DNA of 63,769 nucleotides, counting the filler, from Octopus bimaculoides (taxonomy: Eukaryota): NCBI RefSeq assembly GCF_001194135.2. It is 9 parts of 8 records of this genome, joined end to end, with 100 filler letters (N's around TTAATTAATTAA, not from the genome) between each part and the next. Parts side by side here need not be neighbours in the genome. Positions count along the whole stretch, not along the records: positions 16,606 to 34,795 come from NC_069003.1; 8 more parts are not named here. One strand, given 5' to 3'. The notes under the pieces are model-generated. The model worked only from the letters and a program-made list of their open reading frames with translations. It was not told the origin of the DNA and did not search any database. Shown here piece after piece: positions 10,701-34,795 of this stretch (its first letter is position 1; each line of letters begins with the position of its first letter). The translations under genes were made by a program, and so were the position numbers.

Positions 10701-11209
10701 CGATTCATACCTGTGACTATACGAAATAGCAGTCAAATCTCCCTCAAATTCTACCCTGCTGTCTTAAAATAAAACCACAAAAGAGAACGTGGTTTTATAT
10801 AGAGTATTTAAAAACAAGACTTTGTAAGGTTGAAGCATCTTTGATCATTGGGTTACTCAATCTGCGCTGGCCTGGGGCTAAACAGTATAAGCCTGTGATT
10901 CTATTAAATGACAATTTGATCACTTCCACGTTTCGTATTTCATCTTTTTCCTTCGGTTACTTATTTTAGCATTAAGTCGCTGACACGTCGTCATCACTGA
11001 TAGAATGATGGTTGCTTAAAAAGGTCATTACGAAAAATAAATAAATAAATAAATAAATAAATAAATACAGGTCGGCGAAATGGTAGAATCACTGAAGCGC
11101 CGTATAAATTGCTTTGGAGTCATTTGTTCTGGATCTCTGTGCTGTGGGTTCAATTCTCACCGAGGACAACTTCACATTTTCGTCTTTCGATAGCTAGAAA
11201 AGAACTCCA

Positions 11210-16605: not shown

Positions 16606-16657
16606 CCCCCCCCCCCCCCACCACCTCTCTCTGTTAAAGGGTAGAAATTTCGCTTAC

Positions 16658-16726
16658 CTTGGTGGCTGCTGTCACAATATGAAGAAAGCGGTGCGTATCT
16701 TCGGCATCATTCCATATGGATGTTTG
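16658..16726 (-). CDS. Calpain-like protein exon (domain IIb, catalytic-His region; His replaced by Phe)
   Basis: Acceptor aatctcttttgcAG and donor AAG|GTAAGC; 69 bp, phase 0 to 0. Translates QTSIWNDAEDTHRFLHIVTAATK, which aligns by its end and phase with GLVKGHAYSVTG..(K/Q)| of calpains. Similarity is weak apart from VT and the intron position. Confidence 0.7.
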
Positions 16727-16923
16727 CTGCAAAAGAGATTTGCTTTGTAGAATGTGAGAATGTGCACACATTGTCAAATTATCGATAGAATGTATATTTA
16801 GAAGACGTTATGCGGTGAACTTAAACACTATACTGGGGTCTGGTTTGCTAATTTTGCGACGTAGGCTGAAGGGAAAATCAGCAGCCTGAGCTGAAGTAAA
16901 GAACATTAGAAAATTATTATTAT

Positions 16924-17020
16924 TATCATTATTATTATTCAGATCATTGCCTGGAATCGAACTCGGAATCTCGGGGTTAGTAGCCCGTGCTCTTAACCAC
17001 TACGCCATATACTCATGGGC
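16924..17020 (-). mobile_element. Short tRNA-like SINE / pseudo-tRNA with (AAT)n tail
   Basis: The rc reads GGCGTAGTGGTTAAGAGCACGGGCTACTAACCCCGAGATTCCGAGTTCGATTCCAGGC, with an A box, B box and anticodon-like loop CTACTAA; the acceptor stem is poor. Confidence 0.7.
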
Positions 17021-17189
17021 ATTAGAAAAATACTTCTGCATATTAAAGATTAATGTTGTCATGTCTCAGACATGTAAAATTATCAGTTGAAATACGTCGA
17101 TTAACAAGAATTAATCATGTAATTATTAAACAAAATCTCCCTCTAAGGAAAATTCAAAATATGAAAAATTGCAAACAGAAACAGGAAGA

Positions 17190-17342
17190 AAGTTGTGATG
17201 AAAGAGTACAGCAGGGTTCACCGCCACCCCCTGCCGGATCTTCGTGGATCTGCAGGTGTTTTCGCTCAATAAACACTCACAACGCCCGGGATGGGAATCG
17301 AAACCGCGACCTTACGACCACGAGCCCGCTGCCCTAATCAAT
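17190..17342 (-). mobile_element. SINE family C, tRNA-like head and 5' body
   Basis: The rc reads TGATTAGGGCAGCGGGCTCGTGGTCGTAAGGTCGCGGTTTCGATTCCC followed by family C body; it lies immediately downstream of the calpain exon donor at 17367. Confidence 0.75.
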
Positions 17343-17367
17343 TATTGAACAAAGGTTGGTTAACTAC

Positions 17368-17587
17368 CTGTGAAGGCTGGTAAACTATAAACCCGATTGG
17401 CGTCAGGCGTTTCTCACTGCGCCAACACACAATCAGAGACCGGTGGAAACAAGACATGTGTAAAAGGCGGAAGAGGTTATGTGGAGGGTTGACATCCGGT
17501 GTGAAGTATTCACAGATGGCACCAGTAAGGTCAGTTAGGGCATCCAGGATATTTCCATTTTCGATTGATTCATATGTCCTGTTACAC
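17368..17587 (-). CDS. Calpain-like protein exon (CysPc domain)
   Basis: Acceptor ctttcttcttttcttcAG and donor CAG|GTAGTT; 220 bp, phase 2 to 0. Translates CNRTYESIENGNILDALTDLTGAICEYFTPDVNPPHNLFRLLHMSCFHRSLIVCWRSEKRLTPIGFIVYQPSQ, matching the calpain motif YExLxGGxxxDALxDFTGG. The 3' boundary is less certain because of an alternative donor at 17417. Confidence 0.88.
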
Positions 17588-17887
17588 CTGAAGAAAAGAA
17601 GAAAGGGATATTTAGAAAATATCTTAATGGTTTTTCGACATGACATAGGATTTAGACATAAGAAGAAAACATTTTAGCCAACATGTTAATAAGCTCATTC
17701 GTAGGATTCAAACTTCGTTTTTAACACTAAGCAGTCAACCGCGATATCATTCATACCGCACAGCACTCTCCCATCTTATAACTTTTTAGGCTCTAGGGTG
17801 TGATTGGTGGAAAATTAGCATCTATTATCAGCAATTCGAATAACCACGTGGAATCTTCCCCGCTATCTTATCGTAGTGTTTACTTAC

Positions 17888-18041
17888 TTGGCATAGGCCT
17901 TCTCCAAGAGAGGGGCCCAGTATTCGTGGTGTGAGCCTACGGGTTCACAGTAGGCCACCTGGCTATCCAAGAAGGGGAGGTTGTCATCGACGATGATATC
18001 CTGCCAGGCTCCAAATCGCCACAGTCGGAATATGAAGGCGC
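17888..18041 (-). CDS. Calpain-like protein exon (CysPc domain)
   Basis: Acceptor tcgttctcgtttcAG and donor AA|GTAAGT; 154 bp, phase 1 to 2. Translates (G)AFIFRLWRFGAWQDIIVDDNLPFLDSQVAYCEPVGSHHEYWAPLLEKAYA(K), containing the hallmark calpain motifs GxFxFxxWxFGxWxxVxVDDxLP and ExWxxLLEKAYAK. Too short for the ORF track. Confidence 0.95.
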
Positions 18042-19123
18042 CTGAAACGAGAACGATTGAAGCAACACATCATAGACATGCTTTCATTGACAGATTTCTA
18101 CCCCCCTCCGCCCCCCCTCTCTCTCTATATATATATTTGCCCAAACGACCTCAACATTACCTTCAAAAGTCATCTAAGGCTATGACCACGGGCCCTACGT
18201 ACCCTACCCAAATTCAGGATCACAACACATAAATACACTGCAACATAATTTCTTTTCCTCAACAGTCCCTGTCCTTTTTAATATTGTGTCCCGAAACAGA
18301 TCAAAGAGCAAAAAAAGATCCGACCACCTATGACCGGTATCTGGACCCCAACTCAAACCATTACGTCTTTTCTTCTTTTTTTTTTGCTGTTTTTCAAGGA
18401 ACATTTAATCCCCCGATTAATCCTCCAATAGTGCCATTCTTTTCTGAGACGGTAGAATGAATTCTCTGGCAGTTTGGTTGCTACTTCCAGTATCGCTGTC
18501 TTTTGCTGTCGTCATTNNNNNNNNNNNNNNNNNNNNNNNNNNNNNNNNNNNNNNNNNNNNNNNNNNNNNNNNNNNNNNNNNNNNNNNNNNNNNNNNNNNN
18601 NNNNNNNNNNNNNNNNNNNNNNNNNNNNNNNNNNNNNNNNNNNNNNNNNNNNNNNNNNNNNNNNNNNNNNNNNNNNNNNNNNNNNNNNNNNNNNNNNNNN
18701 NNNNNNNNNNNNNNNNNNNNNNNNNNNNNNNNNNNNNNNNNNNNNNNNNNNNNNNNNNNNNNNNNNNNNNNNNNNNNNNNNNNNNNNNNNNNNNNNNNNN
18801 NNNNNNNNNNNNNNNNNNNNNNNNNNNNNNNNNNNNNNNNNNNNNNNNNNNNNNNNNNNNNNNNNNNNNNNNNNNNNNNNNNNNNNNNNNNNNNNNNNNN
18901 NNNNNNNNNNNNNNNNNNNNNNNNNNNNNNNNNNNNNNNNNNNNNNNNNNNNNNNNNNNNNNNNNNNNNNNNNNNNNNNNNNNNNNNNNNNNNNNNNNNN
19001 NNNNNNNNNNNNNNNNNNNNNNNNNNNNNNNNNNNNNNNNNNNNNNNNNNNNNNNNNNNNNNNNNNNNNNNNNNNNNNNNNNNNNNNNNNNNNNNNNNNN
19101 NNNNNNNNNNNNNNNNNNNNNNN

Positions 19124-19176
<53 letters not shown>

Positions 19177-19341
19177 TATAAACACACATACATACACACA
19201 CATATATACATGCACAGATATGTGTGTGCGTACCTGTATGCATACGTATGTATATATGGATGTATGTGATGAGTGTAATGTGTGTATATGCATGCGAGTG
19301 TGTATGTGTATGTGGGTGACAGTGTGCACCTTTTTTTCCTT

Positions 19342-19379
<38 letters not shown>

Positions 19380-19680
19380 AAACCATTGCTCTGTCTGTTT
19401 GTCTGTCTGTGACCCTGTGACTACATATGTATAGTAGGCATGGGCGCGTAGTTAATAATTACGCCTCGCAATCATGCGATCATCAGAGCATAGGTTCCAT
19501 CCCGCACATTGGTATGTTGTTTATGCGTCTTTTACTGTAACCCAAGTCCGTCAAAAAATTTGGAAGTGGAAACTGGACGGACGGAAACTACGTGGAAGCC
19601 TATCAGAATGGGCTATATCTATAATTCAGTAGGCAAAAGCTTGTTACTCTTTGGGTCAGACTGATTCTGCATAAAGATGT

Positions 19681-19850
19681 AGGCGCAGGCGTGGCTGTGT
19701 GGTAAGAAGCTTGCTTCCCAACCACATGGTTCTCGGTTCAGTCTCACTGTGACACCTTGGAGAGGTGTCTTCTACAGTAGCCCCGGTCCACCAAAGCCTT
19801 GCAAGTGGATTTGATAAATGGAAACTGAAAGAATCCTGTCTTACATGCAT
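19681..19850 (+). mobile_element. SINE family A, 5' half
   Basis: AGGCGCAGGCGTGGCTGTGTGGTAAGAAGCTTGCTTCCCAACCACATGGTT..., matching the 2272 copy. Confidence 0.85.
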
Positions 19851-20328
19851 ATATATATATATANNNNNNNNNNNNNNNNNNNNNNNNNNNNNNNNNNNNN
19901 NNNNNNNNNNNNNNNNNNNNNNNNNNNNNNNNNNNNNNNNNNNNNNNNNNNNNNNNNNNNNNNNNNNNNNNNNNNNNNNNNNNNNNNNNNNNNNNNNNNN
20001 NNNNNNNNNNNNNNNNNNNNNNNNNNNNNNNNNNNNNNNNNNNNNNNNNNNNNNNNNNNNNNNNNNNNNNNNNNNNNNNNNNNNNNNNNNNNNNNNNNNN
20101 NNNNNNNNNNNNNNNNNNNNNNNNNNNNNNNNNNNNNNNNNNNNNNNNNNNNNNNNNNNNNNNNNNNNNNNNNNNNNNNNNNNNNNNNTATACATATATA
20201 CATATATACATATGTATATACATATATATGTATGTTCTAAACACGATGAATGTATAAATGGGTATAAGTTTGCATGTATTTATGTAGCTTCCTTTTTCGT
20301 CTATTCTTAGTGTATGTATGCATGTATC

Positions 20329-20376
<48 letters not shown>

Positions 20377-20720
20377 AATGCATACACACACTACACACAC
20401 ATACACATATGCGCACCAATAGATAGTGACGATTAAAAATGAAAGAAAGTAAGAGAGAATGAGTGAATGAATGAGAATTGTTGACGACGCCATTTTTTCC
20501 GTTGTATTTCTTAATCGCTCCATTCGAGATTCGTCTCTCATTTGGTTGCAACTTGTAATGCAACAATCTCTACTATTTCTTCACTTCTTCTTTTGTAGCC
20601 ATATCTTGCAGCCGTTCAAATAGCACACAAATATATATCTCCATGGAAATCATCACATATCAACGCAACAAGGATATCATTAAGAACATTATTAAGTTTC
20701 CCTTTCTTTTCTTTATTATC

Positions 20721-20772
<52 letters not shown>

Positions 20773-21169
20773 GTATTATTGAGATCGTTATTACCATCGT
20801 CATCAATAAAATTCTTGTTGTTCTCTTATACTTCGCCTTTGTGGCATCTAAAGAAACAATAATCTATAACTAACTGTTGTAGTGTTTTCAGACGATAAAT
20901 AACTAGGATTATGATTATGGAATACAATCAACGTCGTGATCTAAATTTTTCACATGATTAAGTAAGTTCGAGTGTTGGTGGGCTTTACATACTTAACTAT
21001 GGAAGGATATCGAAGCCGTAATCGACATTTTTCACATGATGGATCAATGTTAAGAAGATTATAAATTTATTTAGCCAAAAATAATAAAATAATAAAATAA
21101 TAAAGTTAATACTGGCACAATGATAAAACAGCAAAATTAATAAAATGTGGAATTTTCACGGTTTCTGGG

Positions 21170-21345
21170 GTAGCAGATCTGTTGAACAAATGTCGGTGAA
21201 AATGCTTTGTCATTATTTTCTGCGGACCTTTACGTTCCGAGTTCAAACATTTCTGAGTTCCTCTTTACCTCTAGCTCTACTGGGGTCGATAAAATAAAGT
21301 TTCTCTCGAGTACTAGGATAGATTTAATCAACTGTTTCCTTGCAA
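21170..21345 (+). mobile_element. SINE family B, degenerate
   Basis: GAGTTCAAA...GGGGTCGATAAAATAAAGT pattern, as in 8779-9390. Confidence 0.6.
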
Positions 21346-21366
21346 CAAATATCTGGCCATGTGTAA

Positions 21367-21399
<33 letters not shown>

Positions 21400-21458
21400 C
21401 ACCTGCCCTAAGTGTCAGGAAGACACTCGGCAAGGAATGGAAACAAAACTGAAAGATG

Positions 21459-21492
<34 letters not shown>

Positions 21493-21510
21493 TAATAATA
21501 ATAATAATAA

Positions 21511-21930
21511 TAAAGACCTTCATGGACTTTAACTTCCAAACAGACAATGTGTTAGAGCACCGATTGCCGGATATTGTAACCTTTTGGATGGACAAACAAG
21601 AGTACCTAATAAATGACGTGGCAGAGCCAGGAGATCAACATATGATGAGAGGAAGGAAAAAAAGATGGATAAATATGGAGACCTGAGAATTGAGATCGAT
21701 ATGATGTGGCATCTACGAGAGTCAAACGTCTGGAAACTTTAGAAATACCCTACAATCTAGCTGTATTGTAAATATTGGCATTACTTGGAACTTCACGCAT
21801 ATTTCATAAAATACCGTCTGTCTGAGGTCTTCGTTGTGACTTGACAAACAGTACAAACCCCCGGTAGACACAATATCTTCAATCCACAACATCACGATAT
21901 TGGATATTTTACAACGTCTTCAATAATAAT
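21511..21930 (+). mobile_element. RLE-type LINE 3' remnant (endonuclease region)
   Basis: DFNFQTDNVLEHRLPDIV...LINDVAEPGD...KYGDLRIEI...LALLGTSRI matches the RLE motif WDxxIQTD..I.HRRPDIV...IDVAxP.D. Confidence 0.8.
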
Positions 21931-22953
21931 TATAATGAAGAGAATAATAAGAAGAAGAAACGAGGAACAGGAATTGGAGAGAACCCAGAGTTTGTTTTTG
22001 ACGATGAGAACGATTATAAATCGCAAGGACAGGAGGGGAATTCAAGGTTAAGACGAACAGCAACAGGGACAGAAAGAAGGAATGCGTAGACTTATTTGCG
22101 ATAAAAGTTGAATAAAATACAGGTATTTTTCAATCAAAATAAAAAGTCATTCAATTAAATTGCTTATAAAACAAAAGGAAACAAGTTAAAACAAAAGTGC
22201 CACAGGTGCAACGTAAAAAAGAGAAAAAAAGAAAATTCGAGAAAATTGTTCGGCGAAATCCTTGAACAGGTAACGGTAGAGAAAAGGATATATGTACTCC
22301 CAAGACGAATTGGAAGACAAGAAATGCAAGCCATATTTTCTCACTTGCTTGTTTAGTTTCTAAATGTTATTTTCTTTCTCTTTACTTCCTCTCTTCTCTT
22401 TTCTGTTACACTCTCATTGGAGATATCCCTCGTTTCTATTCTTCTATCACTCTACATCTCTCTAGAATTTCCATCTCCACGATTTTCTTTGTGTTGTCTC
22501 TCCGTCTCTGCCTCTTTCCATTTCCGGCAAGTCCCTTTCTGCTTCCGTTCTGAGCATTTACATCCATTTTCTTTCTCATAATGATAATGATGTGTTGCTC
22601 GTGCGCTTTGCTACAAGGCCGCAGAAGATCATAGGAATACTGTTATAACTGATAAAATCATTAACACCGGATTCCATTATTTTATTATGCTTAAGTCCGG
22701 TAACTACTTTTGTCTGTTGTTAATGTGAGCATTAACTTTTGGCTGAAAATTTAGCATTATGAGCGAATAACAAGCCATTTTGATGAATTTAGGAACACAA
22801 TTGTTTCAGAATACGAAATCAAACACAATGCCTACTAAAAAAGAAAAGTCGTTAAGAAAATGGACAAAAGACGAAAGCATTCGTGTCTTCAATATATAGT
22901 CTGTGCGCATATATATATGTGTGTATGTGTGTGCGTGCATTTACGTATATGAA

Positions 22954-22989
<36 letters not shown>

Positions 22990-25055
22990 NNNNNNNNNNN
23001 NNNNNNNNNNNNNNNNNNNNNNNNNNNNNNNNNNNNNNNNNNNNNNNNNNNNNNNNNNNNNNNNNNNNNNNNNNNNNNNNNNNNNNNNNNNNNNNNNNNN
23101 NNNNNNNNNNNNNNNNNNNNNNNNNNNNNNNNNNNNNNNNNNNNNNNNNNNNNNNNNNNNNNNNNNNNNNNNNNNNNNNNNNNNNNNNNNNNNNNNNNNN
23201 NNNNNNNNNNNNNNNNNNNNNNNNNNNNNNNNNNNNNNNNNNNNNNNNNNNNNNNNNNNNNNNNNNNNNNNNNNNNNNNNNNNNNNNNNNNNNNNNNNNN
23301 NNNNNNNNNNNNNNNNNNNNNNNNNNNNNNNNNNNNNNNNNNNNNNNNNNNNNNNNNNNNNNNNNNNNNNNNNNNNNNNNNNNNNNNNNNNNNNNNNNNN
23401 NNNNNNNNNNNNNNNNNNNNNNNNNNNNNNNNNNNNNNNNNNNNNNNNNNNNNNNNNNNNNNNNNNNNNNNNNNNNNNNNNNNNNNNNNNNNNNNNNNNN
23501 NNNNNNNNNNNNNNNNNNNNNNNNNNNNNNNNNNNNNNNNNNNNNNNNNNNNNNNNNNNNNNNNNNNNNNNNNNNNNNNNNNNNNNNNNNNNNNNNNNNN
23601 NNNNNNNNNNNNNNNNNNNNNNNNNNNNNNNNNNNNNNNNNNNNNNNNNNNNNNNNNNNNNNNNNNNNNNNNNNNNNNNNNNNNNNNNNNNNNNNNNNNN
23701 NNNNNNNNNNNNNNNNNNNNNNNNNNNNNNNNNNNNNNNNNNNNNNNNNNNNNNNNNNNNNNNNNNNNCTATATAGATGCATCCTTGCATATGTAATCAC
23801 ATTTGTGTCTATGTGTTTATGTGCTTGCCTGTATACCTATCACACACGTAACCCTCTGCGTGTGTATGTGTGTGCGCGTGTGTGTATTGCGCGCGCGCGT
23901 GAGTGCGTGGTGTGTCTCTCTGCTTATTCATGTGTTTGTAACTTCAACAACCCCACCACTATCGTCACCACGACCACCAGAGGCTATTATTCCCTACTCC
24001 CTCCATGTCTCCCTTTCGCAACACTTCCGCTAACTACCCCCCCCCCCGCCATCCCTCATACACACATATAACAACCTCTACTCATCCTCGTTACTATGCG
24101 GAATCATTAGCATTTCCACACTTAGATTCCTTACAAATTCTTCCATAAACGCACACGTACATTACATACATAAATAGACATACACACATACATATATATA
24201 TATATACATACATTATACACATACGTACATACGTACGTATGCGCATGCACACACATGCATACATACGTACGTATGCGCATGCACACACATGCACACGCGC
24301 ACACACACATATATATACATGTATACACACATCGAGGTACATAGGCATACATATCTTTAAACATACGCTCATACACACGTGCACAAATGTATGTATGCAT
24401 ACATACATAATTATACATTCATGCACGTACATAAACATACATACCTATACACATACATACGCACATATATATATTTATACATACACACACATGTATATAT
24501 ATATATGCTTACATACCTACATCCACCCACCTACCCATCCATCCATCCATCCATACGTACATACATACATACACACATCGACCTCCAGCCAGTCTTTCCT
24601 CTCACTCTCAGGGATATTTTCTAATACATTTAATTACATTCAAATATCCATACAATCGCCTCCTCCACCTTTCCCTCATACTATGACCATCACCACCACC
24701 ACCACCACCAACCACCACCACAACCGCTCCGGCTCTTCTCTTTCCTCGCCTTGCAGCCATTATTAATTGTCTCTCCCAAATTGTTATAACCCTCGACATC
24801 AAAGATTAAATTTCCCATTAAGTAGCTCTTTATAATTACTTAAGTTGCAGCAAATACATTTAATACAACAAATAACTCAGTGAATTATTGGCCATCTCTA
24901 CAACTCTATCCACATTCTACATTTGCATTTACACACAAACAAACACACTTGAGCGTCTACATTCACGTATACAAGTCACACACACAAATGCACTGCACTT
25001 AACTGCCGTGCCCCTTCCTTCATCTCTCCCACGTAGTACTTAGAACATCCATACA

Positions 25056-25259
25056 TACGAAGGGGAACTGGAAAGTTCCTGGCTTTAAGAGTATCGCGAA
25101 AGGCCTGGCTGGAGGCCCAACCTTTCAAGTTCTTTTACATAGCCTAGAAAAACTAAAGGACTGCTGTAATAAGTGTGTGAATCTGAGAGGGGAAAATGGT
25201 GAATAAATTCATAATTAAGTGATCCTCCTGTATATTTTTACCCAAAGCACCCCTTCGTA
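25056..25259. mobile_element. Mariner-type MITE with TA ends
   Basis: Starts TACGAAGGGGAACTGGAAAGTTCCTGGCTT and ends AAGCACCCCTTCGTA (imperfect TIRs, right TIR internally deleted). Confidence 0.75.
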
Positions 25260-26172
25260 TATACTGTCGTTCATTAAACACACACACACATATATATACA
25301 CACATACACATGCACACAATCACACACAAATATTTGAGATATCATATTACATGTGTGTAAGGCGGTGAGCTGGCGGAATCGTTAGCGCAAAGAGCTTAAG
25401 AGTATTTCGTTCGTCAGTATATTCTGAGTTCAAATCCCACCGTAGTCAGCTTTAATTGTATGCATACACTACTGATTATTTTTTTTAAATATACACACCA
25501 TTAATGTATTGTTTACAAATGCACACACTCACAAATGCACACACACACACAGTATATTGTTTATATAATAATTTCATTGTTACGAACGCTGTTAATTAGT
25601 TGTGTATAAATACACAAACTGCTAATCTATCGTTTACACATACAATTTACACATACAGTTTACACATACACAAACTACTGATAGATTGTGCATACATACA
25701 CATACCAGCAACGAATTGATTGTAAACGTACGCGTCATTAATATATTGTTAATAAATAAAACAAACACACCGATTAATCATGCATATACACAATTAACAC
25801 ATTGTACAAACACTACTGGTAGATCGTGTAAACACAGAGTATATTTGTACATCGCTTTCACGTATAAACGATTGCACTTTTGAAGTTTCGTTGACTTTTA
25901 TCAGAAGGAAAACAATATTAGCGTAAAATTAAAAGAAAAAAATGAAGAAATTAAGAAACAAGGAAAAACAAAAAAATAAAAAGAAATGAAGAGAAAGGAT
26001 TTAATGGAATGAAAGGAGGTAATCGAAGTTAGAGCGTAGCTAAGCTGTGTGGTTAAGGTGTTCGCTTTGCATCCCGTTTAGCTCCAGGTTCGATCCCACG
26101 GCGTGACAACAGGCTGATTATTGAAACTAGTCACAGAATAAAGGCGGTAGAAATAATCGCCGTGCCAAATGG

Positions 26173-26203
<31 letters not shown>

Positions 26204-26385
26204 ATAATAATAATAATTCTGTCCACGATAGGCACAAAGCCCTGAATTTGTGGGGAGGAGGCCAGCCGTTTATATCGAACCCCTACCGTCCAGTACTCAT
26301 GTAGTACTAATTTAATCTGCTAGTTCTCCGCCTAACTAACATCAGCAATAAAGAAGAAGAAGAAGAAGAAGAAGAAGAAGAAGAA

Positions 26386-26416
<31 letters not shown>

Positions 26417-26453
26417 GAAGAGGAGAAGAAGAAGAAAAAGAAAAAGAAGAAGA

Positions 26454-26531
<78 letters not shown>

Positions 26532-27796
26532 AATGGGATGATGAAGAGAAAAAGAAAGCAAAGGTAGATTGAAAATTATTGCGAGAAAAACAAATGTTTT
26601 AAGAAAAGATTTATACAAAATAATTAAAAGCCAGCAAATGACAATTACTTTAGAAAAATCAGTGGAGAGAAAATGGTCTGCGATGCGATAAGAAAACGTC
26701 GTGATTTGTCGCTAAAGTTTCCCTCTTGCACGCAGATATTATCAGTGATTTGTACTTTATTTGAGCAGTTGAAATAAAATATCAAAAATTTATTGAATGT
26801 GGGGAAGAAATGAAGCAATGAAACGGAAGTTGTAAATAGCTGCGGACAAATGAGATGATATCTGGACAATTATGTTGGGAACTAAGTAGTTAGCCAAACA
26901 ATCAGAAAGCTTAAAAGAATACACAAGCATGAAAAACATAAACGAAATGCAAACAATATTAATATGGTAATGCCGAAAGGAAGTAATACTAATATTGTAA
27001 TGTTGAGAGAAAAATAATAAGCGACAAACTCAACAAAAAAAAACAAAAAAAAACGACGAGTTGTTGATGAATAGAATAATAGCTAACAAAAGATGGCTAC
27101 GGTAGCATTGAAATTGATCAATACATCAACATGAGCAATATAAGAGAATAACTCCAACAACTGGGAGATGAAGTACTTAAAGAAATTACAATGGTTGGAT
27201 GGAGAAGAGAAGGACGGGAGGGGAATGGAGGAAAAAAACGTCTTGTGAAGAACATGATTAAATGGAAGGAACGGATGATAACTATATCTGGTTTGTAAGG
27301 GAAATCCTCCACTAAGAATCAGTTGTATCTGGCGAACTGTCTGCATGATTACGGAAAAAAAGAACGGAAAGAATAGAAGAAAAAAATATGATTGGGAAAT
27401 ATTTGTAAGGAAATGAATATGTTTCAGATGTGTTTAAGACTGACGGACAAATGCTGAAAGACAACTGAAACGTAAGTGAAATGAATCCAACGGCAGACAA
27501 TACGATGTACAGAAGAAAGGTTAGAGTGATCAAGGAAAAGTTAAGACAATTGATTAGCGACATTGTCACAGAGAATAAGGAAAAAACAAACAAAAAAACA
27601 TGAAATCCTGGGCTTTTATGATTATATGAAGTCAAAGTCCTGCTAAAAGATACAGAATAAATAAGCAAAGATATAATAGAACCACAATATGAATAAAAGA
27701 AAAAAAAAAACAAAGAAAAAAAACTCAAAGTCTCTCGTTCAAATATTAAACAGAAAACATTGTATAAATAAAACAACGGGCGATATAGGGTGGTGG

Positions 27797-28035
27797 AGGC
27801 GCGTGACTTAGTGGTTAGGGTGTTGGTCTCGTGATCGTAGAATTGTGGTTTCGATTCCTGGACCGGGCGACGTGTTGTGCTCTTGAGCAAAACACTCCAT
27901 TTCTCGTTGCTCCAGTTCGCTCGGCCAGCAAAAATGAGTTAATCCTGCGACGGACTGGCGTCCCGTTCAGGTGGTGAATATAAACGCCATTGGAACCGGG
28001 AAACCGGCGTCCCTTATCAGTCAGCATGATTCAAG
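27797..28035 (+). mobile_element. tRNA-derived SINE with V-SINE-like core
   Basis: Head TTAGTGGTTAGGGTGTTGG...GGTTTCGATTCCTGG, then CTTGAGCAAAACACT...CTGCGACGGACTGGCGTCCCGTTCAGG. A degenerate sister copy lies at about 50195-50380. Confidence 0.7.
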
Positions 28036-28559
28036 AAGGAAACATCTATTTATTTTATTGGATAATTCCTGACTTAAATTAGATCAAAATAAACTAGATT
28101 TAGAGTCTGACAAAGGAATAGATACAATGGAAGATGACAGATGAGAGATATCAGGCACCAGCCAATAGGGAGAAGACAGACGTTCGGCGGTAGCTAACAG
28201 ACAACAAGTGTTTAAAAACATATAACGAACGATGAATGGCAGACGAAAAATGTTTACACAATAGAGAGCAGACAATGGATGGAGCATGGCAGACGACAGA
28301 AATCATCTGTCAACGATATAACGACAGATAACTGACAACTGGAGAGTGAGAACAGTCGACAAATGGCGGATGTAATGAAATCGTGGATGATTATGGTTGA
28401 CAGTCAAAAACGAAGTTGAAGTGAAGAATGATGACGATAACGACGACGATGGCGATGATGATGATGATGATGATGGTGATATTAATGGCGTGATGAAAAT
28501 GGAAACGATGTACGAAATCTTTGCTAAAAGGATCCAATAATAATAATAATAATGATTTT

Positions 28560-28760
28560 AAATTTTGGCTCAAGGACAGCAATTTCGGGGGTCTATTATG
28601 CTGATTCCAGTGCCCGACTGGTTACTTATTTCACAGATCACGAAAGGACGAAAGGCAGAGTCGATCCCGGTGCAATTTAAACTCAAAACGTAAAGACGGA
28701 AGACAATGCCGATAAGCATTTCGCCCGGTGTGCTAACGTTTCTGCCAGCTCGCCGCCTTA
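28560..28760 (-). mobile_element. SINE family B
   Basis: The rc begins GGCGGCGAGCTGGCAGAAACGTTAGCACACCGGGCGAAATGCTT. Confidence 0.8.
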
Positions 28761-28774
28761 ATAATAATAATAAT

Positions 28775-28824
<50 letters not shown>

Positions 28825-28832
28825 TGATGATG

Positions 28833-28887
<55 letters not shown>

Positions 28888-28888
28888 C

Positions 28889-28921
<33 letters not shown>

Positions 28922-28952
28922 TAATAATAATAATAATAATTATAATAATAAT

Positions 28953-29042
<90 letters not shown>

Positions 29043-29088
29043 TAATAATAATAATAATAATAATGATAATAATAATAATAATAATAAA
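28760..29088. repeat. (AAT)n trinucleotide array, about 330 bp
   Basis: Seen directly; starts about 10 bp into the intron after the 29098 donor. Confidence 0.95.
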
Positions 29089-29097
29089 ACGCCGTAC

Positions 29098-29287
29098 CAA
29101 AGTAATCTTCCTGAAATGATTCTTCGAATTTACGGTAACCAGGGATGACTTTTTCCAAACACTTGACGCTTAGGGATGCGATTGCCATAGCCCCTTGAAA
29201 CCATCCTCTTCCGCGCCACAACACCCAAGGAAACGGCCACTGGCACGTGCCGCCGACACCTGTGAACGTGGGATTTTCATCGATTTC
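29098..29287 (-). CDS. Calpain-like protein exon (CysPc domain IIa, active-site Cys region; Cys replaced by Gly)
   Basis: Acceptor tttgcattacAG and donor G|GTACGG; 190 bp, phase 0 to 1. Translates EIDENPTFTGVGGTCQWPFPWVLWRGRGWFQGAMAIASLSVKCLEKVIPGYRKFEESFQEDYF(G). This aligns with the calpain segment E..NP.F..DG....D..QG.LGDCW.LAA.ASL......L.RV.P....F...YAG and joins the 18041 exon in frame. Confidence 0.9.
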
Positions 29288-29329
29288 CTGTAATGCAAAT
29301 AAAACAACTCGAATCAATGATGGTTGTGC

Positions 29330-29374
<45 letters not shown>

Positions 29375-29575
29375 CCAGGACAACGAAGACGACGATGATG
29401 ATGTTGATGATGACGATATCGACAATGAAGATGATTATGATGGAAAAGGGATTATGAATATGATGGTAACGATGACGACGACGCCGATGACGTTGATGAT
29501 GGTGATAATGATGATGATGACGAAGATGATGACGAAGATGATGATGATGATAATGACGATGATGATGACCACTTA
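29330..29575. repeat. (GAT)/(GAC)n trinucleotide array
   Basis: Seen directly; lies about 40 bp upstream (in the gene's sense) of the 29287 acceptor. Confidence 0.9.
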
Positions 29576-29834
29576 TTTCAGTGGTCTCTTTTTTTACCGA
29601 ACCGCTAAGTTAAACACACCAAAATCGGGTGCCAAGCGATGGTGGGAAGATACAGACATAAATAATATATACGACAGGCTTCTTTCAGTTTCCTTCTACC
29701 AAATCCAACCACGAGGCTTTGGTCAGCTCGTGGCTATAGTAGAGGACACTTGATCAAGGTGCCACGCAGTGGGACTGAACCCTGAACCATGTGGTTGGGA
29801 AGCAAGCTTCTTCTCACACTGCCACTCCTGCGCC
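29575..29834 (-). mobile_element. SINE family A
   Basis: Reverse complement of the 2272 and 19681 copies; the plus strand ends ...GCCACTCCTGCGCCT. Confidence 0.85.
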
Positions 29835-31073
29835 TTTGTTTCTATTTCCGTTTTACGATAAGAATTTTATGATTTTAGGTTCTTTTTATCTAATTCTTTT
29901 TATAATAACATAATGATTCCTAATCATAACTGCGTACCTACTTTTGCCCACCCCTGTATATAATAGCCATGAAACAAAAACCACATTTCCCCATTCATTA
30001 CAGCCACCAATCACTACGAAAACAGCTCATTTGTCGGCGGCCATTGTACTACAGCTTCTTTCATCTGAAACAGCCTATAGCCGTTTCCTTTCGCTGACTA
30101 AAGCAACTTGGAAAAGTTTCGCAAAAGTTGAAAACCTGGGAAGATGCACAACTTGCCACCAGCCATTTTACATCTTCATCTGTTATAGCTGCCAGCCATT
30201 CTACATGTTATGTACGCCATGTATCTATAATTAAAGCTTCTTCACTTGTTACGAACTCAACTACGAAAGGAATTTTGCATTCAGTTAGTCTTACATGATG
30301 CCCATGCTTAGCCGAACGAGCGTTCCCAGTTACTGAAAGTATGGTTCTTAGGGTTTTACTGCAGCAAAATTATCCGTTGCTTGACAACCGCAGTTGGTTT
30401 GTTTACGTCTCCGAAACTTAGCGGTTCGGCAAAAGAGACCTATAAAACTAGTATGAGGCTTAAATAAAATAAGCACTGAGTTAGATTAGCCTGACTAAAC
30501 CCCTTCAGGGTGATGCCCCTGCTTGGCCGCACTGCAAAACTGTAACAAGTAGAAGAACATTGTATATTTTCATTCCCCTGGTTCCACACTTTTACAAGAC
30601 TTTTGCTGCTCTCATTCGTTTATCTTCCATTATGATATTTCTTGATATCTCGCTATAATTTTTTAAGTAATGTTTCAAAGATTTTATTCCAATGGAATTG
30701 CATTTTTGCAACGAAATGAATCCCTTTTTATTAGAATCAATTTGTTAAAAAAAAAAAAAAAAATTTTAGTTCTTGATTTTTCCAAAATCTTTCAATTTCT
30801 TGACATTATTATATCAGCTGACAAATGCTACTTTTTCTTTAATTTTTTTTGTTCTCTTTTCCACAGAATAAAGCTGGTTGTTTTATTGTCAATTCTTTGG
30901 TTAAATTTTCATTTTAGATATAAAATAGATTTTTATTTAGCAACAAAAAAAGGAAAAACAGAAAGAAAATAATCCAATATTAAATATATAAAAGATCAAA
31001 TCTAGAAAGGAAAAAGAACAGAACTACGTCACCAAAGAAACGAAGAAAAGGAAAAGAGGGGACAACAGAAGAT

Positions 31074-31110
<37 letters not shown>

Positions 31111-32327
31111 GAAGAGGAGGAGGAGGAGATAGGTATATATATTATTACATATATTTTTGTCGCCGATGTTTTCATCGCGTGGGTGAAAGTTGACATTGTC
31201 TTGAATTCCTCTTCACTAGGAATTGCTATAGAGACAAAATAAATCCCCTCTTGACGTGTGGTACACCGTATACCTGTTCAGGCAACGTCGATTTGATGGA
31301 GAGAGTGAGTTAATGTACGGCACGAACATTTGATCATTATAAGCAAATCATTTGTGCAGGTCATTTGGCAAAAAGATTGAACGCTCATACATCGTCTTCT
31401 ACGAGGGAGTCCATCATTAAAAAAATGTTAAAATAGTATATCGTAGAAGCATAAGCAATTTTTTGCAGATAAATTTCAACAAAAAAGCCTTATATGAACC
31501 CCCTATGCGTACATGGGCTCCGTTTGAGAACCACTGCTATTCTAGTGTAGGGGCTAACAGCGACACACTTTGTTTACACATTGCTTTGTGCTGTTTTAAA
31601 AGGTGGCGTAGAATGTCCTGTTAGGACACATAGCAGAGAATGGGATAAAAATATTTCTTGATTTTGATGATGGCTCGAATGACGCGTGTATTTTTTTTTT
31701 TTTTTTAACTTTCTAAAGAAACCACATCCCATTTAGGTTGGATGTGCTAATTAATATTCACTACAATGTCTGATTCTCTCGCTAATGGCTAAACGCATCA
31801 GATTTTATTTTTGTTCCAATGACCGAGATGTAATCCTTTGTATTGAAACATTTTCATTGTGTTTTGAGATAACATCCGCCATAAGTGTTTTGTTTCTGGT
31901 GCATTCATTGAAACCAATGAAAGCAACAGAAAACGATTACCTTTGTGCCATCGGCACTTCTTAACTTTCTGTGGTTATTCTGAAATACAGTTGCTTATGT
32001 ATTTTAGTTTTCTTTTGGCTTATCCCAACCGTGCCCACCACCCATCACCCATCATTAGTTCATTGCTCTCTTAGCAGAGGAATAAATTTTTATACCAATG
32101 GATATTAAATGAATCCTAACACAGTTTACTTCATTTGTGTAGTCCCACCACGGGGTTTTATTGTGTAGTAAGATATCAGACATATGGGTATGACTGTTAT
32201 ACGCGCGTGCACGTGATTACGTTTTGGTAAATAATTTTTGGCGTTGGAAGGATTCTATTCTGTATAGTGACAGAGTGAAGCATCCGCCACGAAAGAATAG
32301 AGATACATCTATATAGACAGACGAGGT

Positions 32328-32402
<75 letters not shown>

Positions 32403-33078
32403 TACATACACACACACACATATATATATATATATATTATTTCTTTACTACCCACAAGGGGCTACACACAGAGGGGCCAAACAAAGACAGACAAACGGAT
32501 TAAGTCGATTATATCGACCCCAGTGCGTAACTGGTACTTATTTNNNNNNNNNNNNNNNNNNNNNNNNNNNNNNNNNNNNNNNNNNNNNNNNNNNNNNNNN
32601 NNNNNNNNNNNNNNNNNNNNNNNNNNNNNNNNNNNNNNNNNNNNNNNNNNNNNNNNNNNNNNNNNNNNNNNNNNNNNNNNNNNNNNNNNNNNNNNNNNNN
32701 NNNNNNNNNNNNNNNNNNNNNNNNNNNNNNNNNNNNNNNNNNNNNNNNNNNNNNNNNNNNNNNNNNNNNNNNNNNNNNNNNNNNNNNNNNNNNNNNNNNN
32801 NNNNNNNNNNNNNNNNNNNNNNNNNNNNNNNNNNNNNNNNNNNNNNNNNNNNNNNNNNNNNNNNNNNNNNNNNNNNNNNNNNNNNNNNNNNNNNNNNNNN
32901 NNNNNNNNNNNNNNNNNNNNNNNNNNNNNNNNNNNNNNNNNNNNNNNNNNNNNNNNNNNNNNNNNNNNNNNNNNNNNNNNNNNNNNNNNNNNNNNNNNNN
33001 NNNAAAAAATCATGTAATGCGATATCCAGTAGAGCGAACAATAATGACAAAAATATAAAAACTAAAAGAACGTAAAGC

Positions 33079-33144
<66 letters not shown>

Positions 33145-33639
33145 TATTATTATTATTATTATTATTATAAAGATTGCTTGAATAATAATAATAGTAAAAA
33201 TTGAAAATATGTCTAATAATTGAAAAGAAAATAATCTGCGAGTGGTCGCCTCACATCCGGTCAGGTGATCAAAGTTAATTACTTGAGGAAACAAAGGCGA
33301 GCAAAGGCAGCAACCAATTAAAAGCAACCGTTAAAAAGAGCGAAGCAAACAAGTGAGAATGATGAAAAGCGCGAAAGGCAACGTCATGATAATAATGTCT
33401 ACAAAAGAATAACGACCACGTCTTCTCCAATAAGCAACAGAATCGTCGACGAGAAGACAGGATTACAAAAACAAAATTAACAATAACAATAACGACAGAA
33501 TTGGAAAAGTTAAGATCAGCAATGATAGCAAAAAACAGCCGATAATAATGGACGTATAATAAAAGAAAAACAAACGAAAACAGTTATTTCGATTATCGAT
33601 GGGAAGAACCATTCATCGTTTGCTTGTTTCAGTCATTGG

Positions 33640-33950
33640 ACTCCGGCCACGCTGGGGCACGGACTTGATGGGTTTTAATTGAACAAATCAACTCCCGTTG
33701 TTTTTTTTGGAGTTTTTTTTTTAAAGATTTTCTACTGGAGGCACAAGGCTTCAGATTTGGAGTGAGGGAACTAGTCCATTATATCGCCCCCCCCCAGTGT
33801 TTCACTGGTACTTAATTTATCGACCCCCCCCTTAAAGGATGAAAGGCAAAATCAACCTTGGTGGAATTTGAACTTAGAACGTAGCGACGGGCGAAATACC
33901 GCCAAGCATTTCATCCAGCGTGCTAACGAAACTGCCAGCTCGCCGCCCTC
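33640..33950 (-). mobile_element. SINE family B
   Basis: The rc contains GGCGGCGAGCTGGCAG..CGTTAGCACGCTGGATGAAATGCTT...GAGTTCAAATTCC-like sequence and GGTCGATAAATTAAGTACCAGT. Confidence 0.8.
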
Positions 33951-34138
33951 TTTTTTTAAAGCCTAATACTTATTCTATCGGTTTCTTTTTGTCGAAACAT
34001 TGTGTCCAATATCGGCAGATATCGCATATTGCATTTAATGATGTAACGCTTCCTTCCTAGTATATTCAAACGTATAACTATTCATACACACGCACGCACA
34101 CGAACACGCATATACTTCCATGCATTATATACAATCAT

Positions 34139-34169
<31 letters not shown>

Positions 34170-34369
34170 AACATGCATACATACACACACACGTTTTCAT
34201 TAACCTTTAAGGAAACGTAAATTACATATGCTATACACGTTCCGAACCTCCTTATGTTATCATTCCTCCGCAGAAAAATAACTTTGCCAATGGAAAGGAA
34301 AGTAAACTGCAAACAACTACAATGATCTCTACTTCGACTCTACCCCTCTCTCTCTCTCTTTCGCACGCA

Positions 34370-34400
<31 letters not shown>

Positions 34401-34557
34401 AGAATTCCCCCCACCCTCTCTCTCTCACCAATACAGCAGCCATATTAAAAGTCAGAACATTTTATGAAGATGAAGTAGTTTGTGTCTGTAAGAATCATGG
34501 AGCGCTTTCTGAATTTTATTATTTGTTTCTCGTCTGTTGACATTTTCACAAACACAC

Positions 34558-34622
<65 letters not shown>

Positions 34623-34624
34623 AC

Positions 34625-34795
<171 letters not shown>

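Follow-up and report, generated by a model that had tools for sequence, protein, structure and literature searches.

A stretch of Octopus bimaculoides DNA of 63,769 nucleotides (assembly GCF_001194135.2; hereafter the window, in whose coordinates all positions are given) carries part of a calpain-like gene on the minus strand of the piece taken from NC_069003.1, positions 16,606 to 34,795. The gene is probably intact and under selection, encoding a calpain homolog that would be unable to act as a cysteine protease, and it is probably the cephalopod ortholog of an ancient lophotrochozoan family, with a possible role as a non-proteolytic scaffold or regulator. That the product is a selected, non-proteolytic calpain homolog of this family is very likely from the sequence comparisons described below. 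The family itself, found in molluscs, annelids, and brachiopods, is an old and conserved group of dead calpains that had not been described as such.

The gene fragment consisted of four exons, each with a polypyrimidine/AG acceptor and a GT donor, which were spliced at AG/GT sites with matching phases (0-1, 1-2, 2-0, and 0-0) into a stop-free frame of 633 nt, or 211 codons. The same exon coordinates, splice sites, phases, and frame length had been given in a preliminary description of this DNA, and its introns of about 11.1 kb, 300 bp, and 641 bp were measured here at 11056, 300, and 641 nt. Exons and residues are numbered below within this fragment.

Active-site and calcium-site residues

The 211-residue translation matched the Pfam profile Peptidase_C2 (PF00648) with 122 bits and an E value of 3.3e-35 (cut-off, 23.8 bits), and it matched the solved calpain cores of the PDB in phmmer searches with E values of about 1e-27. 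Membership in the calpain superfamily, as defined by this CysPc profile, extended to the orthologs, which covered the whole profile (1-297). The signature of the CysPc fold was retained, including WRFG.W, VDD.LP, LLEKAYAK, the cleft Gly, and LDALTDLTG. The preliminary description had listed these motifs, apart from the cleft Gly, as kept and had suggested the comparison with PF00648, which proved significant.

In the phmmer alignment with the PDB calpains, RGRGWFQGAMAIASLS aligned without a gap to LGD(C)WFLAAIACLT, and Gly28 therefore occupies the position of the nucleophile. The replacement of the nucleophile Cys by Gly, read earlier from codon GGA, is borne out by this ungapped register. The oxyanion-hole Gln had been read as Val; profile alignments instead placed Trp21 in this column, followed by a one-residue insertion. 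In the alignments made with HMMER and hhalign, Phe202 occupied the catalytic His column and His204 the Tyr column of HAY, with a two-residue shift possible after a variable loop. In total, the octopus residues at the catalytic and Ca2+ columns were Gln16, Pro18, Trp21, Gly28, Glu103, Gly126, Phe202, and His204. The exon carrying the catalytic Asn (RNPWG) lies outside the piece, and the Asn column was read from orthologs.

The corresponding columns of the family, numbered as in mu-calpain, were obtained in three ways: the family profile was aligned to m-calpain (1df0), 19 classical calpains were compared with it profile to profile, and two active references were included in a MAFFT alignment. 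The nucleophile column contained Gly in six members, Ala in five, Lys in four, Asp, Ser, Gln, and His in two each, and Thr, Phe, Tyr, and Arg in one each. The Cys that an active protease carries in the QG.LGDCW helix was thus present in none of the 27 members, and Gly stood in its place both in the octopus fragment and in a second cephalopod-like sequence, L003, described below. The oxyanion Gln column contained Trp in 26 of 27 members. Tyr or Phe occupied the His column in 21 of 25, with a nearly invariant His two residues later (Met in Capitella); among the molluscs, this His of the LH pair was itself nearly invariant. At the Asn column, 19 of 22 members had Cys; the exceptions were Owenia (Asn), Capitella (Asp), and the chiton (Ser).

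Two ligands of the Ca2+ switch were also lost, since the Asp106 column of Ca site 1 was Pro in 15 of 27 members and the Glu302 column of Ca site 2 was never acidic. Furthermore, the column of Arg104, another residue of the Ca2+ switch, never contained Arg. Glu185 and Glu333 were retained, as was the equivalent of the cleft residue Gly208 (27 of 28 sequences). Because the Cys loss was common to 27 orthologs across three phyla, it predates the octopus lineage by hundreds of millions of years. A nucleophile site that drifts freely within a conserved flanking helix is the signature of a long-standing loss of catalysis.

Family membership, selection, and full-length architecture

A hidden Markov model built from octopus and Capitella, searched exhaustively against 1.84 billion representative proteins, returned seven full-length proteins of 700 to 865 residues, which scored 255 to 302 bits; all other calpains scored 200 bits or less, and most scored about 100 to 120. 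A second search with the family alignment gave 27 named members, after which the score stepped from 346 to 266 bits, the next match being a fish calpain-3. The members included the following: the bivalves Solemya, Ruditapes, Pecten, Argopecten, Ylistrum, Mactra, Mytilus, Mizuhopecten, Dreissena, Saccostrea, and Tegillarca; the gastropods Biomphalaria, Physella, Lymnaea, Lottia, Patella, Haliotis, Pomacea, Littorina, Batillaria, and Gigantopelta; the chiton Liolophura; the annelids Owenia, Capitella, and Lamellibrachia; and a Lingula-like brachiopod sequence. Their database names were automatic (“uncharacterized protein,” “calpain-3-like,” “calpain-9,” and “calpain-6-like”). The Lottia member XP_009066084 (P0016) appears under the name LOTTRUNC3 in a published calpain phylogeny (Hastings et al. 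2017, PMC5650170, S1 Table). The preliminary description had proposed a cephalopod pseudo-calpain, which proved too narrow, as the family spans molluscs, annelids, and brachiopods and the octopus gene is its cephalopod member.

The octopus translation was 50 to 58% identical to the molluscan members, versus 34 to 35% to the classical references. It contained all of the family motifs, FPW..W...WF, IPGYR, CE[YF]FTPD.NPP, VCWR..K.LT..GF, and R[FY]LHI[VI]TA.TK, and the family-invariant residues within the fragment were retained. In addition, the exon boundaries RP.|EI.., ..DY.G|AF.., and ..YAK| matched the scallop exon ends at amino acids 73, 136, and 187 and were also found in L003. The score gap, the motifs, and the shared intron positions together place the octopus sequence in the LOTTRUNC3-type family. 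A neighbor-joining tree of the family tracked the species tree: the octopus sequence and L003 formed a molluscan branch of their own outside the gastropods, bivalves, and chiton, and the annelids lay outside all molluscs, a pattern consistent with a single-copy gene that was inherited vertically and with the window being of cephalopod origin. The Capitella and Lingula loci (L001 and L002) were too short to include the active-site exon. The sequences P0004 to P0010, tried as other cephalopods, were rejected as oyster sequences matching Saccostrea P0183.

L003 is a cephalopod-like contig of 3659 bp from Logan ERR12921341 that was identically assembled in eight runs. It contained homologs of exons 1 to 3 at 282-471, 1281-1434, and 2035-2254, of lengths equal to those in octopus (190, 154, and 220 nt) and with the AG/GT sites kept, separated by introns of 809 and 600 bp whose sequence could not be aligned with the window. 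A homolog of exon 4 was not found in the 1.4 kb downstream of exon 3 in L003. The two sequences were 82% identical in protein and 74% in DNA; for exon 3 alone, the values were 93% and 79%. The proportion of differences was 0.10 at nonsynonymous sites (pN) and 0.84 at synonymous sites (pS), where saturation was reached, giving a ratio of roughly 0.1 or lower. The codon at the nucleophile site was GGC, a synonymous difference from GGA by which Gly was kept. Conservation of Gly at the Cys site, proposed as a check on the earlier reading, held for L003; in the wider family the residue in this column varied and was never Cys. The earlier view of a selected gene rather than a pseudogene, for which the ratio of nonsynonymous to synonymous change (dN/dS) had been named as a check, was strengthened by the identical exon lengths and splice sites of L003, by the protein identity retained at saturated synonymous sites, by the three intron positions shared with scallop, and by the species-like tree. 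In a mussel-like species, the full frame of 698 residues ran uninterrupted on Logan contigs of 2.4 to 2.5 kb, and a spliced mRNA is therefore implied.

Full-length members, whose remaining parts correspond to DNA outside the window, have a dead CysPc domain followed by a linker of about 250 residues and a C2L domain, and they end in a CaaX box. The Pfam domains found in these orthologs were PF00648 and PF01067 (C2L) only; the scan detected no EF-hand families and no PF00168. The linker was Ser-rich and of low complexity, with no secondary structure predicted in a low-confidence model. In the ortholog proteins P0011 to P0017 and P0169 to P0184, it carried the motif R-P-x-S-A-P (RPKSAP, RPHSAP, RPRSAP, RRMSAP, and others) some 25 residues ahead of C2L; a strict pattern detected it in at least 18 of 24 members, and inspection by eye added Ruditapes, Lottia, and Mactra. 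This motif may represent an RxxSxP site of the basophilic-kinase or 14-3-3 mode-1-like type. Other conserved blocks of the linker were ST[FY]S[AT]SDIS and E.I.V.EN..T.KVDNT.

A CaaX motif was defined as a Cys four residues from the C terminus, followed by two mostly aliphatic residues and then Ser, Met, Gln, or Ala. Ends of the form C-a-a-S occurred in 14 of 24 models (CAIS, CIIS, CKIS, CVIS, CIVS, CMVS, CLIS, CRVS, and CMMS). A CaaX box with Ser at X is of the farnesyltransferase type, as in H-Ras CVLS. Five models ended in ..GW or ..GWYV (Saccostrea, Patella, Dreissena, Pomacea, and Solemya), which corresponds to read-through of a TG|GTAA or TG|GTAT donor. In scallop (Pecten, L011:29008-29025 and 29742-29756), ..GGA TG|gtaagt is joined to tttcag|T ATC ATA TCG TGA, giving CIIS, so that the Cys codon of the CaaX box is split by an intron (TG|gt...ag|Y) that precedes a mini-exon of about 10 nt. 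The annotated end of the oyster Saccostrea, ..GGA TGG TAA, is a read-through of TG|gtaaat, and a single unannotated candidate mini-exon about 270 bp downstream, ttatttcag|T GTC ATT TCT TAA, would give CVIS (L012:~20725-20740 and ~21006-21037). Given the scallop and oyster mini-exons, the CaaX box can be taken as family-wide and the GW ends as annotation artifacts.

Gene structure and surrounding sequence

The exons, introns, and active-site codons of the octopus fragment are listed in Table 1. When family proteins were searched against the piece by tblastn, the matches were exactly the four exons and nothing more. Exon 1, with acceptor ttgcattacag and donor GTACGG, was matched by 7 of 7 family proteins (E values of 1e-14 to 1e-20), and comparison with scallop showed it to be the second coding exon of the gene. 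The end of exon 4, after ..TK, matched the position of an exon skipped in the Lottia gene model.

Table 1. Features of the calpain-like gene fragment, in window coordinates and in the order of transcription
Feature	Position	Strand	Description
Coding exon 1	29098..29287	-	190 nt; amino acids 1-63 plus 1 nt; active-site helix region ...FPWVLWRGRGWFQGAMAIASLS...IPGYR...
Trp21 codon TGG	29225..29227	-	Oxyanion-hole Gln column, from profile alignments
Gly28 codon GGA	29204..29206	-	Column of the calpain nucleophile Cys (C105 in m-calpain, C115 in mu-calpain)
Intron 1	18042..29097	-	Nominally 11056 nt; three assembly gaps, microsatellites, one dispersed-repeat copy
Coding exon 2	17888..18041	-	154 nt; ...AFIFRLWRFGAWQDIIVDDNLP...EYWAPLLEKAYAK
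Glu103	17923-17925	-	Counterpart of Glu185 of Ca site 1; in exon 2
Intron 2	17588..17887	-	300 nt
Coding exon 3	17368..17587	-	220 nt; CNRTYESIENGNILDALTDLTGAICEYFTPDVNPP...SLIVCWRSEKRLTPIGFIVYQPSQ
Gly126	17554-17556	-	Conserved cleft Gly; in exon 3
Intron 3	16727..17367	-	641 nt
Coding exon 4	16658..16726	-	69 nt; QTSIWNDAEDTHRFLHIVTAATK; carries the family motif R[FY]LHI[VI]TA.TK
Phe202	16685-16687	-	Catalytic His column; in exon 4
His204	16679-16681	-	Two residues past Phe202
Start of following intron	16606..16657	-	Donor GTAAGC; the gene leaves the piece here

The fragment was truncated at both ends, the remainder of PC2, the linker, the C2L domain, and the C terminus lying outside the window. 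The exon map of the scallop and oyster orthologs indicated at least six downstream exons past 16606, and by this comparison the fragment is judged to comprise coding exons 2 to 5 of about eleven. Neither tblastn nor a motif search detected the first coding exon (DLFVDPSFPPD..YVYSGDD.YE..F.RP) in 29288-34795, and it may be located in the gap at 32544-33003 or outside the piece.

Three assembly gaps (18517-19123, 19864-20188, and 22990-23768) all fell within intron 1 and left the exons untouched. Three of the six gap edges (19124, 19863, and 22989) adjoined simple repeats rich in AT, a possible cause of some of the breaks in the assembly. The length of intron 1 is nominal, and the blocks of sequence between its gaps are likewise ordered as in the assembly. 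At the ...DYFG|AF... junction across this intron, no residue was missing relative to the orthologs, and the ungapped contig L003 contained the same two exons 809 bp apart and in the same phase; coding continuity across intron 1 is therefore sound. No further calpain-like exon was found within intron 1 by tblastn with classical calpains.

Two other readings of the active-site exon were tried and rejected. In frame +1, exon 1 reads ..GRFLGCCG.., which resembles ..LGDCW.., but a stop follows 20 codons on and the frame was not conserved in L003. An alternative or mutually exclusive active-site exon was sought by tblastn with classical calpains, and none was present in the piece or in L003.

Introns differed greatly in length between the two cephalopod-like sequences, with intron 1 at nominally 11 kb in octopus versus 809 bp in L003 and intron 2 at 300 bp versus 600 bp. 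Long trinucleotide microsatellites flanked exon 1, with (ATT/AAT)n right after the donor and (GAT/ATC)n upstream (28706-29097 and 29310-29580). Two dispersed repeat pairs, each with one copy in intron 1 and one in the upstream intron or flank, were present at 19681-19846 and 29667-29835 (inverted, 80% over 169 bp) and at 28643-28757 and 33834-33947 (77% over 115 bp); they are probably interspersed elements resembling short interspersed nuclear elements. Scans for tRNAs, Rfam families, and repeats showed no tRNA or Rfam match and only the microsatellites and these two repeat pairs. Stretches in introns 2 and 3 (~16945-17010 and ~17285-17340) looked tRNA-like by eye and were not called by ARAGORN or Rfam.

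Proposed function, alternative explanations, and relation to known calpains

The most likely function is that of a non-proteolytic binding protein, probably membrane-anchored by farnesylation, that would act as a scaffold, a substrate trap, or a regulator, because the family keeps the fold, the cleft Gly, the C2L domain, and the CaaX box but has lost the nucleophile, the oxyanion Gln, and the Ca2+ switch. The protein would be farnesylated on the CaaX Cys and thereby held at the membrane, and its C2L domain and retained substrate cleft would bind partners without cleaving them. In this way it could scaffold or regulate calpain-type signaling, or trap substrates, independently of activation by Ca2+. 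A possible point of control is the RxxSxP motif conserved in the linker, as a site for phosphorylation or of the 14-3-3 type. The parts of this proposal differ in probability. Prenyl anchoring of the octopus-lineage protein has about an even chance, and any specific scaffold or decoy role is rather unlikely. The whole combination is possible, with a probability somewhat short of even: a pseudo-calpain older than 500 million years that is tethered to the membrane by farnesylation of its mini-exon-encoded CaaX box, has lost the triad and the Ca2+ switch while keeping the substrate cleft and the C2L domain, and serves as a lipid-anchored scaffold or trap for substrates, with phosphorylation or 14-3-3 binding at RPxSAP as its gate.

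Several points weigh against the overall interpretation. Only 211 codons are present in the window, and a disabling lesion could lie elsewhere in this copy of the gene. The protein searches returned no cephalopod protein of the family. Orthologs are annotated in more than 20 other molluscs, and the gene may be unannotated or mis-modeled in cephalopod genome annotations. Support for expression comes from the mussel-like contigs, outside the cephalopods. The C terminus lies outside the piece, so the CaaX box is seen in orthologs only, and the scaffold function, the membrane anchoring, and the phospho-regulation are all suggestions read from motifs. An AlphaFold2 model of the Haliotis ortholog, built from a 20-sequence alignment, was confident only for the C2L domain and, with a mean pLDDT (predicted local distance difference test) of 46, was too poor for examining the cleft and was not used for its geometry. 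Finally, the conserved His two residues past the His column and the conserved Cys in the Asn column leave a small chance of unconventional chemistry.

In the form in which such chemistry would be expected, the protein would still be a hydrolase that used the Cys of the Asn column together with this His, or another conserved Cys (in CE[YF] or VCWR), and the frequency of the former Cys (19 of 22), the near invariance of the LH His in molluscs, and the retention of the cleft Gly in 27 of 28 sequences would all suit it. However, annelids and the chiton lack the Cys of the Asn column (Asn in Owenia, Asp in Capitella, and Ser in the chiton) and Capitella has Met instead of the His, so that no alternative dyad is universal; furthermore, the oxyanion Gln is replaced by a bulky Trp, and active calpains, too, have the Cys of VCW (in GCS), without using it for catalysis. 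A surviving hydrolase is very improbable on this evidence. A decaying calpain pseudogene, whose four-exon open frame would be a remnant, is highly improbable: the protein identity of 82% to L003 at saturated synonymous sites, the identical exon lengths and splice sites, and the family-invariant residues kept inside the fragment all argue for constraint, and the loss of the catalytic Cys, though compatible with a pseudogene, is common to 27 orthologs in three phyla. The absence of both gene ends from the piece and of any annotated cephalopod protein from the protein searches would fit decay.

There is almost no likelihood that the missing Cys is an artifact, whether through a sequencing or assembly error at the codon, a wrong join over the gaps, a hidden alternative exon, or an RNA edit that restores Cys. 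The assembly is a draft with three gaps in intron 1, which speaks for such an error, but two base changes would be needed to turn GGA into TGY, and L003, an independent contig from a different species, reads GGC. Neither of the exon's two other frames is both open and conserved, and neither the piece nor the gap-free 809-bp intron of L003 contained a second calpain-like exon. Adenosine-to-inosine editing, by the genetic code, is unable to make a Cys codon from GGA.

As a selected gene for a non-proteolytic calpain homolog, the octopus gene falls within an already recognized class, of which it is a further, apparently unannotated example. Inactive calpain homologs include CAPN6, Drosophila CalpC, the Caenorhabditis elegans CLPRs, and 344 calpain-like proteins that lack a triad residue (PMC3315469). 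CAPN6 likewise lacks the nucleophile Cys and is kept for a non-proteolytic role, the stabilization of microtubules (PMC3315469, PMC13413365), but it belongs to the TRA/CAPN5 group with a C-terminal C2 domain, whereas the full-length orthologs described here have no C2 domain and end in a CaaX box. The family profile scored 233 bits to CAPN2 versus 158 to CAPN5, which sets the family apart from the TRA/CAPN5-CAPN6 group, and its Cys loss is independent of that in CAPN6. CalpC, of “classical family C,” likewise has a classical-type CysPc domain with catalytic residues lost (PMC5650170), but it keeps a PEF domain that the new family lacks, a separation made by domain content. Because the lophotrochozoan members of family C keep the triad according to that paper, the family of the octopus gene is a different clade. 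The CLPRs and the 344 triad-deficient proteins of Joyce et al. 2012 (PMC3315469) represent the same phenomenon, with proposed non-proteolytic roles, but they come from other lineages and have other architectures; the main text of that study names neither Lottia nor Capitella.

The “truncated” calpains of Hastings et al., with a CysPc domain, one C2L domain, and no PEF domain, are of the same architecture class (PMC5650170). A lophotrochozoan-only “Truncated L” clade is described there; in the text of that paper, the activity of truncated calpains is called “an open question,” and triad loss, the long linker, and the CaaX box are not mentioned. The closest active relatives are the classical CAPN1, CAPN2, and CAPN3, since the family profile matched m-calpain with an E value of 7e-68 and the CysPc and C2L domains aligned end to end. 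From these the family differs by its low identity (34 to 35%), the lack of a Cys nucleophile, the loss of the Ca2+-switch residues, and, in the orthologs, the lack of a PEF domain, the linker of about 250 residues inserted between CysPc and C2L, and the CaaX end. Literature searches found no prenylated or CaaX calpain and no described lophotrochozoan dead calpain, and the family-level architecture with a CaaX end appears to be previously undescribed. Androglobin, considered as a candidate identity, was rejected, since the similarity to classical calpains was far too high and the orthologs contained only PF00648 and PF01067.

The family has consequences for annotation as well as for biology. 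Several mollusc gene models are cut at the TG|GT donor and hence lack the CaaX mini-exon, and the automated names “calpain-3-like,” “calpain-9,” and “calpain-1 catalytic subunit” wrongly suggest an active protease. The octopus gene and its orthologs add a well-supported and independently evolved case, conserved across at least three phyla, to the dead calpains that have been retained (CAPN6, CalpC, and the CLPRs), and their architecture of dead CysPc, linker, C2L, and CaaX suggests a testable non-proteolytic, membrane-associated role.

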